A stretch of 64,000 nt of DNA from Zygnema circumcarinatum SAG 698-1b. Its lineage: Eukaryota > Plantae > Zygnematophyceae. Of the stretch, positions 2,960 to 14,700 are shown one piece after another. The stretch's first letter is position 1. Every line of letters starts with the position of its first letter. Both the position numbers and the translations under genes were made by a program. Under the pieces are notes generated by a model. That model did no database searches. It saw only the letters and a program-made list of their open reading frames with translations, and was not told the origin of the DNA. The stretch is taken from assembly GCA_037447605.1 (NCBI GenBank), contig CM074804.1:4689909-4753908 (forward strand), given 5' to 3'.

Positions 2960-3915
2960 TCCATTGTACGGACTTTTTCCCAAAGTCCAATGTTTGGAGT
3001 TTGGACGTTGCACGGTCCCGTACGGCCACCGCGCGCCCGATTCCCGCAAACGTTTTCAGGAGCCGTCTGCCCCCGCGGGCGGGCGGGCGGCCCAGGCCCG
3101 TCCCGCCCGGGCAGGCAGGCGCGGGGCCCGGCCGGGCCGGCTCGCCAGCACGCGACAGCCGGTTGGTCGGATCGGGGCCGTCCGGACCGTCAGATCTGCG
3201 CCTCGCCCGGTCTCCAACTTGCCCGCGCGTAGGTCGGCGCGGCGTCCTTTTCGGCCCGCCCGCAACGATCGTGCTCGCTGTACGAGAGGTGTACGACCTC
3301 CGTATGACTTACCGGCCGGCCGGCCGGCCGTCATCCAACCGCCCGCAGTGCGGCGCGGCGCTGTCCGGCCGTACTCATTATTGTTATTGGCCCGCCCGCC
3401 CGCCGTAAAATCGCACCCCGCCCTTAAAAACAATCGGAGCGGTTTTTTTCTGGTTTTTCCTAAATCTCGTTACAAAAGATAAATATTTGCAGAAATATGC
3501 CCGGAGTAAAAATATCGCAGGATACCTGCACGGTACGGATTGGGCCCCGCCCGCCCGCCCCGGCGAGCGGGGGGCCCGGCAGGGGCGGGCGGGGCGGGGC
3601 CGGGCAGGACAGGCCGGGGCCCGCCTGGATTTTGCGGGCGGGCCTAAAAAATTGCCGAGGTCCTGCCCGCCCGCGCAGCCCAGAAAAGTAAAGGCGGGCG
3701 GGCGGGTGGGCGGGCGGGCGGGTGGGCGGGATCCGGGTCGCTCGCGCCGCCGTACGCTGCCGCCCGGCCGGCCGCCCTCCGCGGAGAGGGACCGCCGCCA
3801 TAGCTGCGCCTGCTCGCGTCTCGCCCTGCTCGGAAGGGGGGCGGGCAGGGCGGCGCTGTGGACTGCTTCACGCGACCTCCCTTCTGCTCCGTCCTCCTCT
3901 GGCGTCCGCCTGCTG

Positions 3916-3948
<33 letters not shown>

Positions 3949-4020
3949 CTTGACGGCGACCTGACTTCTGCTCGATCTTCATCTTCGCGCTCGGGAGGAG
4001 AGGCGTTGTAGGGGGAGGCC
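2960..4020 (+). promoter_or_regulatory. GC-rich promoter/5'UTR of the pyrophosphatase-like gene
   Basis: Dense GGGCGG/CCGCCC boxes and CGTAC motifs, and a (CTG)n tract at ~3908-3946. A probable 5'UTR intron runs ~4045-4414 (ag|gtcctc ... cgcag|). Confidence 0.5.
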
Positions 4021-4475
4021 ATGGCCACCGAGGATGCGCGTTAGGTCCTCGTTTCTGGCTTGATTTCTGCCAGTTTGTTTTTGGAGGTATAGTGCAATGC
4101 TTGTGCCGAAGGTGATTAGCTTGCAAGGGCTGTACTTGTCCTTGTTGATTTTTGCATTTGATTTGAATGTAAATTAGAACTTTAGGGTACCGGTTCTCTT
4201 TGTGAAGATCAGCCGTTTTCTTGCTTGGACTGTCAGTTTGAAGTCATTTCTTCTCGCTCGACCACTCTCTGCACCCGAAGGTGTTTCAGGAGGATCCGAG
4301 TGCGGTGTTCCGCTTACGAGGCACATTGACTTTAACGTGGAGAAAATGTGAAACGAACGTGCGTTTGAGCTGACGGAAGAAATCTGAAAGATTTTCTTTT
4401 CTTGTACCGCGCAGGACGACCTTTGCAGCCAAGAGTAGACATTCTCCCCTCGTTTCCTGTTAAAGCAGAGAGAAC

Positions 4476-7400
4476 ATGGACAAGCACAGCGTCACTTCCG
4501 CAGCTGCAGAATCCAATTCTCTACGGCAGACGATTGAATTTGGCCCGCCGTTAACATTACGTTATCGCATGCTCTTCTTGGATAAGCAGTTCCGTCCTCT
4601 TTCTCCATGGCACAATATTCCTTTGTATGCCGGAGAGAGCTACGTAAACTTTCTGTGCACAACTCCAAAAGGTACTTGGGCTCGTTTTGAAGTGGCAGAA
4701 AAAGAAGACTTCAATCCGCTTCGGTTGGTGAAACGATTGAAAGCAGGGGCACATTTTTCCAAGAACTGTGAATGGAATATGGGACTGCTGCCGCAAACTT
4801 GGGGCGATCCGGAACAAGTGAGCGCTGAATTTGGAGGGCTGCCTTTTAATGGGGCGCCTGTTGAGGTGGTAGAGATCGGAAACCGGCAAGCGAACAGAGG
4901 GGAGGTCTATCCAGTGAAGCCGCTGGGAGCGTTTGCTGTCATCGACAAGCAGTCCAATGTGTCATGGAAAATTGTCGCAGTCGCTGCCATGGACTGGCTG
5001 GCCAATATCCTTTTTGATGTGGACGACGTGGTTCGCGTCCGACCAAACCTTTTGGACGATATTTCCGAGTGGTTGAGAACCTGCGAATGCATTGGTTCAG
5101 GTGCATTATCTTGACTTCACTTCTTGCTTTTATTTGTTTTTTTTTTTTCTCTTTCATTGGGCTTTTTCCTCCAGAGCATCAGTCAATCTTATAGTTTAGA
5201 CCTCAGTGGTAATGGATGTGTGCCACGAGATTTTCGTTGAACAGAATCTGCCGCCTGTTTCTTCAAGAACTTTCAGGAGTCAAAATGCCATCGGCGCTCG
5301 GTTTTCCATGGAGTATTGTTAGTGATGAGCTCGTAAAGAAGACGAGATTGTGGGAAGTGCGCGTTTCACCTTGCTCAGTTCAGCTCATTGAATGCTTCTC
5401 GTGTGGTTGAAAACAGACGACAAGGAGAAAAGCATTGGTTTGGACAAGCGTGCAGGCGGCTGCACGACCACCGTTCAGGTGATTGCAGAAGCCCACGCCG
5501 CGTGGCAGCTGCACCACGATTCGCTGAAGCTGCCGGAGCCCTGGCTGCCGCAGGCCAAGATGATTAAGGCCACAAGCTTGGAAGGCATGTGGTATCGCTA
5601 CACGGGAGCAGAAAGCACGCTGAGGATACTGCTGTCCCAAGGGAAAAGCGAACCTGCAAGGAAGCAAATTGGGAGCAAAGTAGAGGGCGACAGCTCCAAA
5701 TCGAACAAAATCCTGAGCTTCCTGCGCTCCAAGCCGCGAGCAGGACGGAACCGGTCTTCTGCAGTGGAATCGACGCAGGCTGAGGAAAGAAATGCCGCGA
5801 ACAAGGACGCTGTAAAGGAGTCGGGGGAAATGAAGGGCACGGAAGCAACCCCTCTGAACGTCACAGCTGTTGCGGAATTAGAGGTGAAGGAGGAGGCACA
5901 GTCACCATGCAGTGTTGCACTATCTGTTGACACTGAAGCTGATGACGGCGCAGCTTCTCCCGCATTGTCAACTGTTAGCTCGGTACAGGAGAAACCTCCG
6001 GTGGAAGGACAAAAAGGCAGCGAAATGGGAGATGCCGAGCTTGACTCTGTATCGATGGTTCCAGATGGCTCTGTCAGCCAAAGCCAAAACAGTGTTGGAA
6101 CGCCTGAACGGCAAGAGAACAGAGAGGAAAAGAGTTTGGAGGAAAAGGCATCTGTTGTAGTTCAGGATGTTGAGGTTGCTCCAACCGCCGTCGTGGGTGT
6201 GGAATCGATCAAAGAAGAACTAAGGGGTTTTCGCAGTGGCAGGAACTATAATATCAGGCTCGCTGAGGAAACCGCTGAGATGTATGACAGGAAAAATTTT
6301 GGAGGATCAGGTGTGCTGATGCCTAGAAGTTCATATTTTGATGATGTTTTCACAGTTGCCGAGAGATCAGAGGTCCTGGAAAAACTGGACGCGAACATGG
6401 AGCAGGGTGGAAGAGCGCAAGTCCGAGAGATGAGAAGCAGAAGGCTCAAGTTTGCAGGTCAGGTAGGGGAGCCTGCAGAGGTGGGGCAAAGGACTGGCTT
6501 GTTACGGGGAGAGGAGGCGAGCCTGCAAAGGGAAGCAATGAGTGTGGGCCAACTGCAAGGAGCAAGAATGGCAAGGGCTGCACAGGACAGGTCCGCAGTC
6601 GAAGGTGATCCTGAGTGGGTCGGAAATACTGTCTCTTCCCAGCGGGCTGCAAGTCGAAGGTCGCAGTATGGGGGTGAGGGCAGAGCTCCCATCGCCAGAC
6701 GTCCTCCACGGAGAGCTGACTACAATGCTGAAGGCCATGGCCACGTCAGCAGTGTACGGCAGTTGAAAGATGACTTGCCTGAAGGTGATCAGCTAGCAGA
6801 CGCGTCTGCGTATGCAGGGAGAGACCCTCCGAGTTGGTACAGGCAAGGGGATTATTTCAGCACGGGGATGCTCAAGGAAGAAAAACCAAGCGGAGTCATC
6901 GATAATGGTATACGCAAAAGCTATTCTACACAGAACATTATGGCTCCTGTGGACCCTCCGCCGCCGAACCAGGATGACAATTGGGATTGGGCCGAGGCAG
7001 CGAACTTCACGCGATCCTTGAGTGCCAAATTTATCCCTAACGGGGGAGGCAAGATCGCTTCTGATGCGGACATAGCTCAGCCGAGATTGGTATCGAGTAT
7101 GGGAATCAGGCGTTCGCACAGTTTGGGCGTGGATGATAGAGAAATGATAATGGCGGTAGCGGCATGGCATAGCCAGAACAATCAGGAAAGTTGGGAGGAG
7201 GGATCACATGTTGCACGGCAGGAGTCGAGCGGCTGTGAGAGCGATTTTTCAGATCCAGAAAATGCAGATGAAGGTGCAAGGTGGCACAGTCGGGAAGTAG
7301 GAGGAGATGATGCTTATATACCGTTGGCTGAAGTTTTGGATGATTATGGGCGGCAGGCAGGTTCTCCGTATACGATTGATGTCCCGAATGGCGCCGCTGA

Positions 7401-7776
7401 TGCACAACCATTGTACAGGTCTTCCTCGAAGCAGAGGAGTTCTGGAAGACAGTCCTTAGGGGCAAAATCTAGGTCAAGAAGTACTCTTTCTGAAGATACT
7501 TTCAAACCTATGGTGACGAACACTGACTTTGCCGATATGTCAGCCTACTCTGCCCCTAAGGTTGCCTTGGCTGAGGATAGCACCAGCAGGGGGGCGAGGA
7601 AAACGGGAGGCACATCACGATATCGTAGTGCTGCTGACTTGCAGTGGGAAGAAGCTGTACGTACGGTGTCCAAAAGCGTTGGGAAACCAGTGTCTCTACG
7701 ACTGTCCAACGAAGACAAGGCTCTGTTGAACCCTGCAGAGCACAGGAACGTGCGGTTTGGAACCCTGAGATGGTAG
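4476..7776 (+). CDS. Soluble inorganic pyrophosphatase-fold protein with degenerate active site and ~740-aa low-complexity C-terminal tail (~994 aa); join(4476..5100,5417..7776)
   Basis: ORF 4476 has SPWHNIPL, WNMGLLPQTWGDP, VEVVEIG, VKPLGAFAVID and WKIVAV, which are family I sPPase landmarks. The phase-1 GT-AG intron 5101-5416 joins it to the 794-aa ORF, whose start (IGLDKRAGG...VIAEAHAAW) completes the fold. Confidence 0.85.
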
Positions 7777-8711
7777 GGGTGCTCTGAAAGCCTGGAGGGA
7801 AACTATGACCTAGCGCCAGATCTACGGCCCATTTCTGTACCATTTCTTGCTAAGTTTCTTCAAATGCTGGAGTGTCGATCGCGAAAGTGGCTCTGCATCC
7901 GGCTGAGCTAGTCAGTCTTTTGGGTAGCCTGTCTCTGCAGTCCTGAGGTAGCTTATCCAGTCTAGTTCTTACAGACGTCTGTTATGTTACGTCTGTTACG
8001 TTATGTCATCCTCTATTGGAAAGCAGTGATGTGAATACAAGGGCAACAAATACTCTTGGTTCGCGAAGATCTGCAAAGCGGTAGCTCCACAGGACTACGA
8101 TTGTTTCCTTAGGAAAAAGGGGAGTCAGTGGAGCTCCGTTGTACGGGAGCTTGACACATTTTTTTTTTGATAGACTTATTTGTCCATAAAGTGTAGCGCC
8201 TGAGATTTAACGTGATCTTTGGCGTTTGTTGCTCTCTTAAATTCAAAATGATTTAAGTTTGTGTTGCTCACTTGCACTATTGTACCTTGCGCGTTTTCCG
8301 TTTCGCGTTATTCCTGCAATGAGCCATGTCTTCAAGAAATCAGGAGCGTTCGTGAGGAAAGTTTCGCACAAGCATTTGAGAGTCATTACTCGTCGGTGCA
8401 CTCCTATCCGGACAACTCTGCCATTTCCTAGCGCGCCAGAGCTACTGTGAAGCCGAGGGAGGGCCGGTTGAGGGGAGGGAGGGAGGTAGGGAGGGAGGGA
8501 GAGAGGAAGGGAGGGTTCTCCGTCCGTCCTGCCTGCGGTCGCGTTACTCCCTTCCGCGTTTCCCCTCGGACAGGCCGCCCCCCTGGAAGGAACGAGGACC
8601 CGTCCGGCCCAGACCGGAGCGGACCGCTCTCCCGCCCTCTTGGAGGAACCCACCGGCTGAACCGCAAGCACTGTACGGTTCCGTACAGTACTGCGCGGTC
8701 AATCGCCGCAG

Positions 8712-11700: not shown

Positions 11701-14700
11701 CGCCGGGCTGGGAATGGTGGGCGACATCGGAATCTCCATGCGTTCATTGGGGGAGCGGGGAAGGCGAGAGGGAGAGTCGCGATTATCATCCGTCATCATC
11801 AACGAAGAAGTTCGAGGCGGCCCGGGCAACCCTAGCCCTCGGTGTCCGTGATAAAGGGGAATGCGTCGCGAGGTCATGGCCATGAGAAGGGGAGAGTCAC
11901 AAGATGGGCGTCATTGGCCGGCCAGGAAATGGGGAGGGAAGCGTCGCCTTCGTCATCCCATGAGGGGATTTCCCGCGGATCCGCATGGGGGTGGCGATGG
12001 GTAAAGTCAGGGTCCTCGGCGATGGAGGTGGTGGTGGCGGCTGTCGATCGGCCCATCTGCGAATAGGACATCATGCGAGGGCTTGGTGATAAAAATCTGT
12101 GGGAAGATGCTGGGGTTCAAGAGGGTGGGTGGAGGAATGGGTTGAAGGAGCGGCGGATGCGTAACCCGGAGAGGAGGGCGAAGGATTACTTGGTGAGGCC
12201 ATCCAGCATTGCCGTGACTCTGGCCCGGGGCGGTGGGTGACCTTAGCACATTATATCCTCCAACTTCATCACCATCGTGCAAACTTAGAGGCGTGAGGTA
12301 GCCATGATGTGCGGCCAAGTGAGGGGCATGTGGTCGATCCGGATGATAGCGGGCTGGTAGGCGTCGAAAGAGCTTGAGCTACCAAATTACTTGGCGGAAG
12401 AGGATGGCAGCGGCCTCTCTCCCTGCAATAGGGCTGCTCACTTGGTCTCGGTTTACGAGCAGAGACCACAGCATATGCTTGACGGGTGTTCCCCATGTCG
12501 AGAATGCTTGGCTGGACGGGTTGATTGGAAGTTTGAGGGTTTGAGGTTGCAGGCCAATACAGCTGCTAAAAAGCTAATCTAAACCTCTGGTAGATGCTTG
12601 GACTCCGGTAGCTACTCCCCGCGGGCATGGAGGGCGTCGCGAGAAGGGCATAGCCCTTGATGAACCCGGCGATGGGAATGGGTGAGCCCGAAGGACTTGG
12701 TGGTGAGGGTTTGTGGAGTCGGCATGAGGGCAATGGCTTCAATCTTATGCGGGTGATGGTTGAGGCCATTGATGCGGCGGTGCGAGATGAGTGATCTCTT
12801 GGTGGCCCCATTTGCACTTCTTGGGTGCAATCTTCAGACGCGCACTGATGAGCTGTTGCAGGACTTGGTCAATGTGTTGCAGGTGGGAGGACCAGTCCTT
12901 GCTGTGGATCGAAGCATCATCCACGTAAGGCTCGCAGAAGGCACGACAGGGGCCGAACACCTGGTTGGCCAGGCGCTGGTGAGTCTGACTGGAATTCTTG
13001 AGCCCGAATGGAAGCACTGTCCACTGCACAAAGCGGCGTGGCTGTCGCGAAGCCATCTTACAGCGATCGGCTATGAAGGGGTATCTGCGAAGGATTTCTG
13101 CGTGTCAAGGGCGAGAACCACCCAGGGCCATCGAGGAGGCGCCGTGGAGAATCAGGTCGCATCGGTAATGTGTAGGGATCCCAACTTTGTTGTGCATTGA
13201 CTTGTTAGTCCCCACGAGGCAGGGTGTGCCATCGGCTTTGGGGGCGAGAGCGGGAGCTGGCCGGCCCTTCTCGGAGTTCCATCAATCCGGCGGCCCGCGT
13301 TCTGTTCGATGCGTGGATTCGACATCGACCTGCTGTCGCGGCCCGGATGATGAGAAATTAGGGGTCATCACGGGGAGGCGCATCCGTATCGATGTGGTGC
13401 GCAGGTCGGGGCAGTCTTGCGATGTCAGTGAATGTGGTAGAAAAACTAGGTGATTTATTTGCGCTTGCCGTAGTTGAGAATGCTTGATAAGTGCGAGAGA
13501 ATTGCGAGGCCCTAATACGCATCGCCTATTTCCAACCACTCCTCATCGCCGATGGTCTCATGTGGGGGAAAGCTGGGTGCAGGTATCACTGGCGGCAACA
13601 GTTCGTCCGTTGGCGCACCGAGAGCTGGACTCGGAGGAGCAGGAGGGGGAGTCTCGTCATCGGTATCAGAATTGGCCGATCCATAAGAAGAATGGGGGCT
13701 GCCGACCGAATGGTACATGGTGATCTCCGGGTAGGAGACCTGCGCCGTGGCGTGGCGCTTGGGGTAGGCGGAGGTGGTAAGGGACTCGAGGATGATTGGG
13801 AAGGAGCAGTCTGTCCCGCCAGCAGATAGGTGCAGTTTACATGTAGCAAAGTCGATTTGCGCTCCCCTCGCGATGAGCCAATCTGAGCCCAGCAGGATAG
13901 AATAGTGTTCAGCGGCCGTGATGACCGCATTCACCGTGGCTCCCATCTCGCCAAGACTGATGACCACTTGGGCGCTGCCCAATCCTTCATGTAAGCTCCC
14001 TTCAACCCCCACATATCGGGGAACGGGCTCAAGTGTCTTGTCCAACTTAACCCCTGCAGCCTTCATCACAGGCTTGGACAGAACTGTGCGCATGGCTCCT
14101 GTGTCGATCATGGCTTTGCTGGGATGACCGTTGAGCCATACATTGACAATGATCCGCACATTGGGTGTTGGGATGAGAGGAGGATCACGGAATGTCGGGG
14201 AGGATGGCGAGGCGGCTGGAGTCGGCGGCCAGTAGCCATATGGTGGATATCACAAGCGGCGAGGGCGTCTGAAGGGAGGAGCCACCAAGGAATCGTAGGA
14301 GAGCCGTAGGGTAGCCTACTACTTGTTTGTGGCAGCTTTGACCCTACGGCCCGGCAGCACCTGAGTACAAAGCTGCATCCAAGCTGTGACAAGGTAATGC
14401 CCGATCTGCTTGCTTGTCTCCCATGAGTTATTTTACCATGCGTTCTCGAGATAGAGCGTCTGGCATCGAGAGGTGGTCGGCTTGTCGGCTGCCAGGGGTA
14501 GAAAGCGGGCTGCTCGGGAGCGATATGGAGGATTGAGTACATCTCTTGATGCGGTAGGCGTCGGCTACGCGGCCTTGCATTGTCGCTCCTCTTCGTGAAT
14601 CTTTAATTTCCTCCTCGGCGAGGATCCAAAAGGTGCAGTGAAGGAGGATGACTGAAGTTGCCGGGCCCGAGGTGATGGCGGCAGTGGTGCAGTACCCCAG

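Follow-up and report, generated by a model that had tools for sequence, protein, structure and literature searches.

A soluble inorganic pyrophosphatase (sPPase) is a textbook housekeeping enzyme, and a gene that has kept its fold but replaced most of its active site raises the question of what the fold is still used for. Such a gene lies on the plus strand of a 64-kb window from Zygnema circumcarinatum SAG 698-1b (contig CM074804.1; the window is the whole stretch of DNA that was analysed, and all coordinates are counted from its first letter), where its coding region extends from 4476 to 7776. The predicted protein joins an N-terminal head, which resembles the family I sPPases, to a long C-terminal tail with the composition of a disordered region. 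A preliminary description of this DNA, drawn from its letters alone, had proposed a pseudoenzyme scaffold. The analysis presented here arrives at a related answer, which we regard as probable: that the head is a non-catalytic binding or assembly module retained by selection, and that the tail is a rapidly evolving docking region under the control of phosphorylation.

Gene structure and transcripts

The locus contains two plus-strand open reading frames (ORFs), at 4476-5114 (212 amino acids, aa) and 5392-7776 (794 aa). The latter is by far the longest ORF of the window, and at its own base composition the chance of 785 codons free of stops is 1.5e-17. Contigs of four public runs, each produced by a separate study of this organism, were compared with positions 3900-8600. 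All four are RNA-type assemblies that carry spliced forms, and in every one of them the segments 4087-4414 and 5101-5416, both bounded by GT..AG, are skipped. Removal of 5101-5416 joins the two ORFs in frame through the split codon G|AC (Asp), in phase 1. The intron that the preliminary description had called intact is thus borne out by spliced contigs with the frame kept, while its count of a single intron has to be extended by the one in the 5′ leader.

Two contigs are especially informative. One of 3705 nt (run X16) begins at 3961, crosses both junctions, and ends in the 3′ untranslated region (UTR) at 8267, and another of 3543 nt (run X19) follows the same course from 3961 to 8107. Single contigs therefore span leader, head, and tail, which places head and tail on one mRNA. 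Word depth is 22-345 for the spliced contigs, as against 2-11 for those that contain intron sequence. Throughout, the transcript contigs are identical to the window, consistent with a single strain behind the four runs; the strand of the RNA cannot be told from them.

The gene model opens with a 5′ leader exon (3961-4086), seen in spliced contigs of all four runs. Its true start may lie farther upstream, because the contigs are cut at a CTG repeat (3910-3947). Intron 1 (4087-4414, 328 nt) falls within the leader; in all four runs the contigs join 4084 to 4413, with the cut set two nucleotides further on (GAG|GTATAG and GCGCAG|GA). Exon 2 (4415-5100) encodes residues 1-208 and the first base of codon 209, and its ATG at 4476 is preceded by an in-frame TAA at 4461-4463. 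Intron 2 (5101-5416, phase 1, GT..AG) is likewise removed in the four runs, through a joint of 5097 to 5414 with the cut three nucleotides further on (CAG|GTGCAT and AACAG|AC). The last exon, exon 3, runs in the spliced contigs from 5417 to about 8270; it contains the TAG stop codon (7774-7776) and the 3′ UTR (7777-8270), within which the contigs end at 8107-8270. The product is a single in-frame ORF of 994 residues. No gene was seen on the opposite strand, where the minus-strand ORFs reach at most 125 aa.

The repeat at 3910-3947 is a (CTG)12.7 microsatellite in the 5′ leader. The leader also contains two short, overlapping upstream ORFs, one at 4021-4044 (MATEDAR and a stop) and one at 4034-4063 (MRVRSSFLA and a stop). 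Microsatellite and upstream ORFs, which all lie upstream of the leader intron, might influence how the main ORF is translated.

The predicted fold of the head

The protein encoded by exon 2 matches the Pfam profile PF00719 with an E-value of 1.5e-16 and 61 bits (cutoff 23.5) over profile positions 3-121 of 153; the remainder of the profile falls in the next exon. HMMER alignment to the PDB pairs it with the solved eukaryotic family I sPPases (human, yeast, and trypanosomatid) at E 1e-28. An AlphaFold2 model of the exon-2 protein, for which a 56-sequence family alignment served as input, has a mean predicted local distance difference test (pLDDT) of 92.2 and a predicted template modelling score (pTM) of 0.87. 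Foldseek superposes this model on human PPA1 (6c45) with a template modelling (TM) score of 0.85 and a root-mean-square deviation of 1.4 Å. The pyrophosphatase fold named in the preliminary description, a twisted beta-barrel with helices A and B, is thus retained, and in the model the geometry of the pocket is kept as well.

The fold continues beyond the exon boundary. The first 60-145 residues of exon 3 resemble those of related proteins (blastp E down to 2e-13), and about 75 residues of this region belong to the fold, among them helix B (AEAHAAWQL), PEPWLP, and LEGMWYRYT. The complete head of a natural relative, P0006 (residues 48-357), was also modelled (pLDDT 88.8), and in this orthologue model the segment corresponding to the exon-3 part is confidently predicted. 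Residues 18-301 of the P0006 head overlay residues 1-285 of human and yeast sPPase with Z 32 (VIA-align), whereas comparison with the short plant-cytosolic or bacterial-type sPPase gives only Z about 21. Since the overlay extends over the whole human and yeast chain, the head is a complete sPPase fold of the long (animal/fungal) type. The PEPWLP..WxxYT segment was also considered as an extension specific to the family, and this was rejected, as the structural alignment pairs it with the C-terminal part that the human and yeast sPPases ordinarily have.

The head accordingly comprises residues 18 to about 284 and ends near 5643. Its first part (residues 18-208; 4527-5099) is defined by Pfam, the PDB alignment, AlphaFold2, and Foldseek, and contains the motifs TTP, ARFE, GAHF, WNMG, FNGAPVE, VIDK, VSWK, and TCEC. 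The second part (residues 209 to about 284; 5417-5643), also on the plus strand, is defined by blastp to relatives and by the orthologue model. NCBIfam gave only sub-threshold pyrophosphatase (PPase) matches, and the ESM Atlas, searched by features and by shape, returned ordinary PPase clusters only.

Loss of the catalytic residues

A HMMER search with the exon-2 protein against 1.84 billion representatives returned 1634 matches. The family analysis covers the best 150 of these 1634, among which there are 139 single-domain proteins. Active-site residues were called from a HMMER alignment to human PPA1 and from a MAFFT alignment of the 139 heads, and are given in yeast numbering.

Only three of the 13 active-site residues, E58, D147, and K154, are kept in the window protein. 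The replacements are E48 to Thr, K56 to Arg, R78 to Ala (with a His at the following position, and with R78 paired to Lys or His in some pairwise alignments), Y93 to Met, D115 to Asn, D117 to Ala, D120 to Glu, D152 to Ser, Y192 to Cys, and K193 to Glu. The count of about ten changes made in the preliminary description thereby becomes exactly ten. The signature D-[SGDN]-D-[PE]-[LIVMF]-D-[LIVMGAC] is not matched, and its aligned place is occupied by N-G-A-P-V-E-V. The 64 canonical enzymes of the same match list keep the active-site positions at 86-100% and the Asp triad of the signature at 98-100%.

In the canonical enzyme, D115, D120, and D152 bind metal ions, D117 is the general base, and R78, Y93, Y192, and K193 contact PPi. 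D117 activates the attacking water together with two metal ions, and D115, D120, and D152 are drawn among the catalytic residues in a figure of the same review (PMC11210485). With this catalytic set lost, hydrolysis of inorganic pyrophosphate (PPi) by the canonical mechanism is judged very unlikely for the head. The earlier verdict of a catalytically dead domain is supported: the fold is kept, but no Asp of the signature triad is left and the replacements number ten among the 13 active-site residues.

A family of degenerate pyrophosphatase-like proteins

The loss of catalytic residues is shared with many of the closest matches. Among the 139 single-domain proteins, 75 keep no more than six of 14 scored positions; these rank above the canonical enzymes and are 40-55% identical to the window protein. 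The other 64 keep at least nine of the 14. Of the 74 degenerate heads placed in a quick LG+G4 tree, 73, that of the window protein among them, are gathered on the same side of a branch whose Shimodaira-Hasegawa-like approximate likelihood ratio test (SH-aLRT) support is 98, a value to be read with the caution due to quick-tree support. The lone exception is a separate, partly degenerate protein. The tree points to one ancestral catalytic loss that was followed by diversification. The architecture proposed in the preliminary description stands insofar as a putatively dead head carries a long tail, but it is not peculiar to this gene and is instead the norm of a multi-gene family.

At the former catalytic positions the family varies: E48 is represented by Thr, Lys, or Leu, D117 by Arg, Gly, or Ser, D152 by Ser, Ala, or Thr, and K193 by His, Asp, or Leu. 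The near-invariant positions of the family are structural ones that it has in common with true PPases, with the exception of Y145 (85% of the family, against 22% of the canonical enzymes). Variable catalytic positions in combination with structural invariants argue for relaxed catalysis rather than for a new catalytic set. The features typical of the family, namely C61, T63, G66, W68, R83, H93, Y145, L200, C203, and the PEPWLP/WxxYT segment, are all found in the window protein.

Thirty clusters of the family were looked up. All of the named members belong to Closterium species or to Mesotaenium endlicherianum, with several paralogues per genome, and the remaining clusters consist of unnamed transcriptome or metagenome proteins. 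A word search with a Closterium member found matches in Closterium and in one transcriptome only. On the 30 clusters looked up and this word search, the family is so far named only in conjugating green algae, and it may extend beyond them. With Closterium and Mesotaenium as the nearest named relatives, the placement among streptophytes that had been expected from the letters proved right. In the databases these relatives are labelled 'unnamed protein product' or 'hypothetical protein', and once, automatically, 'inorganic pyrophosphatase'.

Pairs of Closterium proteins allow head and tail to be compared directly. Their heads are 93% identical with no gaps. The identity of their tails, where these can be aligned, is 60%, and the tail alignment contains 348 gap columns. 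In these relatives, therefore, the dead head is far more constrained than the tail. The evidence for constraint thus comes from the family level and from the Closterium pairs, and that for expression and splicing from the window gene itself.

Some of the matches contain more than one PPase-like domain. The top match by summed score, P0001 (5113 aa, from an 18.7-kb contig; E 2e-131, 30% identity), has about 19 such domains in tandem, and smaller arrays are found in P0004 (1320 aa, four domains), P0019 (three domains), and P0053 (four matched stretches). In addition, one subgroup of the family, P0047, P0056, P0061, P0074, and P0079, has a common conserved C-terminal motif, ERWGGGEGGL(K/R)R...LRRS(L/I)SF, which is absent from the window protein.

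Composition and relatives of the tail

The tail (5644-7773, plus strand) comprises about 710 residues, without a Pfam domain or detectable homologue, and is predicted from its composition to be disordered. It consists of 12% Ser, 10.7% Ala, 9.0% Glu, 8.6% Arg, and 8.3% Gly, with an isoelectric point (pI) of 5.3 and a net charge of -17. Disorder-promoting residues make up 63% of it and its grand average of hydropathy (GRAVY) is -0.81, values that are typical of disorder. The acidic, Ser/Arg-rich character described earlier is evident in these figures. The earlier length of some 740 residues is reduced to about 710, since the fold runs about 75 residues into the last exon. The Trp motifs listed in the preliminary description are all present, but Trp amounts to 1.3% of the tail, which is no enrichment over an average protein, and no conservation of the motifs was found.

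Searches for relatives of the tail gave little. Pfam produced one sub-threshold chance match, and the last exon (786 aa), used as the query of a word-index search, had no match at E ≤ 0.001. When the tail was compared by blastp with 79 family proteins, no similarity was detected past the first 60-145 residues of exon 3, and a 12-mer BLOSUM scan found no tail window common to more family tails than shuffled ones. An island of the form 'TV..x..LEKL' is shared with one Closterium cluster (P0003, P0151, and P0158), in which SVWETLSTVETVDMLEKL is similar to YFDDVFTVAERSEVLEKL of the tail, at 6373-6417 of the window (residues 319-333 of exon 3); with E 25 it is not significant and was dismissed.

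Tails free of domains are also present in 14 of the 15 long relatives. The exception is P0153 (Closterium sp. NIES-54, 1385 aa), which ends in a C-terminal reticulon domain (PF02453, E 1e-34). This domain probably reflects two genes merged in annotation, though it could belong to a real membrane-anchored variant.

A recurrent motif in the tails

Within the tail of the window protein, the pattern hydrophobic-x-[RK]-S-x-S occurs three times on the plus strand, at intervals of 32-33 residues: IRKSYSTQNI (6910-6939), FTRSLSAKFI (7006-7035), and IRRSHSLGVD (7105-7134). In 32 family tails, [LIVMF]x[RK]SxS was observed 27 times, as compared to 6.9 ± 2.6 times in shuffled tails (maximum 16 in 300 shuffles), an excess of about fourfold under shuffles that preserve composition and leave local clustering of Arg and Ser uncontrolled. 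A stricter pattern, R[RK]SxS with a hydrophobic residue after it, was observed 13 times in the same tails and 0.7 times after shuffling.

The three copies match the patterns hydrophobic(-5)-x-basic(-3)-x-x-S and R-S-x-S. They fit the consensus of basophilic plant kinases of the SnRK1/CDPK type, and resemble the mode-I sites of 14-3-3 proteins. The three motifs are thus candidate phosphosites of the SnRK1/CDPK type, or 14-3-3 mode-I-like sites.

Possible roles of the protein

The explanation that we consider probable is that the gene encodes a pseudoenzyme, in which a selected, non-catalytic head of PPase fold, used for binding or assembly, is carried on a disordered, fast-evolving docking tail regulated by phosphorylation. 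According to this explanation, the head would be a stable module that selection has preserved for binding or assembly without catalysis. The tail of some 710 residues would be an intrinsically disordered and rapidly evolving docking platform, and phosphorylation at its three motifs would switch it. This last step is proposed because the motifs fit the SnRK1/CDPK consensus and resemble 14-3-3 mode-I sites. We infer the lack of activity, the binding role, the phosphorylation, and any partner from the comparisons described above.

Several observations weigh against this explanation. With E58, D147, and K154 still in place and only a conservative change of D120 to Glu, the head may retain some binding of anions or metals. 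The tail lacks detectable similarity even to the nearest relatives, and most of it may be weakly constrained. Furthermore, the test of the tail motif was chosen after the motif had been seen, and its shuffles ignore the clustering of Arg and Ser. Finally, the constraint on the head was measured in relatives.

One specific form of the binding role is that the heads recognise di-anionic phosphate ligands, which might be PPi, an inositol pyrophosphate, or S-x-S motifs of their own tails with both Ser residues phosphorylated. We regard this as a long shot. If true, the former active site would be the place where the tail docks, and the proteins would be scaffolds of a new kind for phosphate-status or phospho-switch signalling.

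Four other explanations were weighed. The one that survives best, although it is still unlikely, is that the protein is a ligand sensor, whose dead pocket binds an anionic phosphate (PPi, polyphosphate, inositol pyrophosphate, or a phosphoprotein) without turnover and reports phosphate or energy status via the tail. The pocket geometry kept in the model would suit such a role. So would the residual charge of the pocket, for 80% of the family keep K154, 79% have His or Arg next to the place of R78, and 46% are basic at K56; the window protein has R70, H93, and K165 at these places, and E58 and E120 are mostly kept. Yet canonical binding of PPi requires three to four Mg ions on the Asp cluster that has been lost, as well as R78, Y192, and K193, all of which are replaced. 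Moreover, the pocket positions differ among family members, which argues against one common ligand.

A regulatory role, in which the head forms heterodimers with an active sPPase of the long type so as to inhibit, localise, or scaffold it, appears quite improbable. Eukaryotic long-type sPPases are homodimers, the whole fold is kept here, and pseudoenzymes often act on active paralogues. However, the residues of the dimer interface of the yeast enzyme, R51, W52, and H87, are not kept, being replaced by Lys, by Gly (Gly in 85% of the family), and by Lys, respectively. The terminal [FY][DE]xxW helix, which is present in other members, is missing from the window protein as well, and a family as large and diverse as this one (about 75 clusters) is a poor fit to a single conserved partner.

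More doubtful still is a neofunctionalised enzyme, in which a new set of catalytic residues, perhaps the Cys and His typical of the family, would act on another substrate. C61 (91%), H93 (64%), and C203 (53%) do lie in or near the old pocket, but C61 is also Cys in 52% of the canonical enzymes and no new polar residue is near-invariant. The invariants of the family are structural, whereas catalytic residues are normally conserved at more than 95%.

Lastly, that the gene is a non-functional remnant, a useless duplicate that is still transcribed while it decays, as the tail without detectable homologue might suggest, is highly improbable in view of the intact 994-codon ORF with its open frame of 785 codons (chance 1.5e-17), the correct splicing of both introns in four studies, the confident AlphaFold2 model, the 40-55% identity of the head to relatives that belong to different conjugating-algal orders, the much greater conservation of heads than of tails in the Closterium pairs, and the near-monophyly of the family with the same loss, findings that together also speak against the decaying duplicate which the preliminary description had raised as a counter-argument.

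Relation to known proteins

The closest known counterparts of the head are the long eukaryotic family I sPPases, yeast IPP1 and human PPA1 (PDB 1E9G and 6C45). These have the same fold over the whole of their ~285 residues, the C-terminal segment beyond helix B included, and are about 30% identical to the window head, which keeps SPWH, NP, WNxGxLPQTW, GxVYxVKxL, WK, and EW. Unlike them, the window protein has N-G-A-P-V-E in place of D-x-D-x-x-D and ten of 13 active-site residues replaced, it does not keep the residues of the yeast dimer interface, and it carries the disordered tail of ~710 aa. The short plant and bacterial sPPases (Arabidopsis PPA1, PDB 5LS0 and 4LUG, and E. coli PPase) have the same core barrel (Z about 21), but are more distant, are active, and are without the N- and C-terminal segments of the window head.

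Other PPase domains are joined to additional sequence. The trypanosomatid acidocalcisomal VSP1 (PDB 5CUU and 5CUY) and the diatom ATP-sulfurylase-PPase fusions combine a PPase domain with extra sequence in this manner, and rank with the best matches in both sequence and structure. Both differ from the window protein in that their catalytic set is kept, they are active, and their partners are folded (EF-hand and ATP sulfurylase, respectively), whereas here an apparently dead head is joined to a disordered partner. Drosophila NURF-38 is an active sPPase that forms a subunit of the NURF chromatin remodeller. It provides a precedent for an sPPase fold that serves as a structural component within a larger complex, although it has no tail, unlike the window protein. 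Among plant pseudoenzymes, the beta-amylase-like proteins, pseudokinases, and pseudophosphatases are likewise enzyme folds that were selected after catalytic loss and reused for binding or regulation; the fold is a different one.

Literature searches found no description of a pseudoenzyme derived from a family I sPPase, or of these algal proteins, in agreement with the preliminary description, which had considered the architecture undescribed. Pseudoenzymes as such are well known; what would be new, as we found no report of it, is a pseudoenzyme family of a fold for which none is known. In the Zygnema genome paper, orthogroups specific to Zygnematophyceae are enriched for the broad Gene Ontology (GO) term 'pyrophosphatase activity', with no description of the proteins concerned (PMC11096116). 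This enrichment may be due in part to the degenerate PPase-like family.

The family comprises at least 75 sequence clusters, with several copies per genome, and would represent a fold that was kept under selection after one ancestral loss and to which a long disordered tail is attached. Its members that bear a species name come, so far, exclusively from the algal lineage that is sister to the land plants. If its members are signalling scaffolds, they would form part of the lineage-specific signalling toolkit that is discussed for plant terrestrialisation, and would provide a clean system in which to learn to what new uses a dead PPase pocket can be put.

Surrounding sequence

The remainder of the window was inspected for other features. 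Rfam gave no match within it, and a scan for bacterial promoters and terminators was discounted, as the gene is eukaryotic. Upstream of the gene, the DNA at 3000-4000 has a GC content of 67-73% and contains GGCG and 25-nt tandem repeats, with long spurious ORFs in several frames. On the other side, a (GGGA)n simple repeat occupies 8473-8515, about 200 nt past the transcript end, and contigs break there. Farther downstream, a minus-strand ORF at 13515-14159 has matches to retrotransposon-type aspartyl proteases (PF13975, E 6.6e-10, and RVP_2), and neighbouring ORFs extend to about 15350. The ORF is probably the remnant of a long terminal repeat (LTR) retrotransposon that lies downstream of the pyrophosphatase-like gene.

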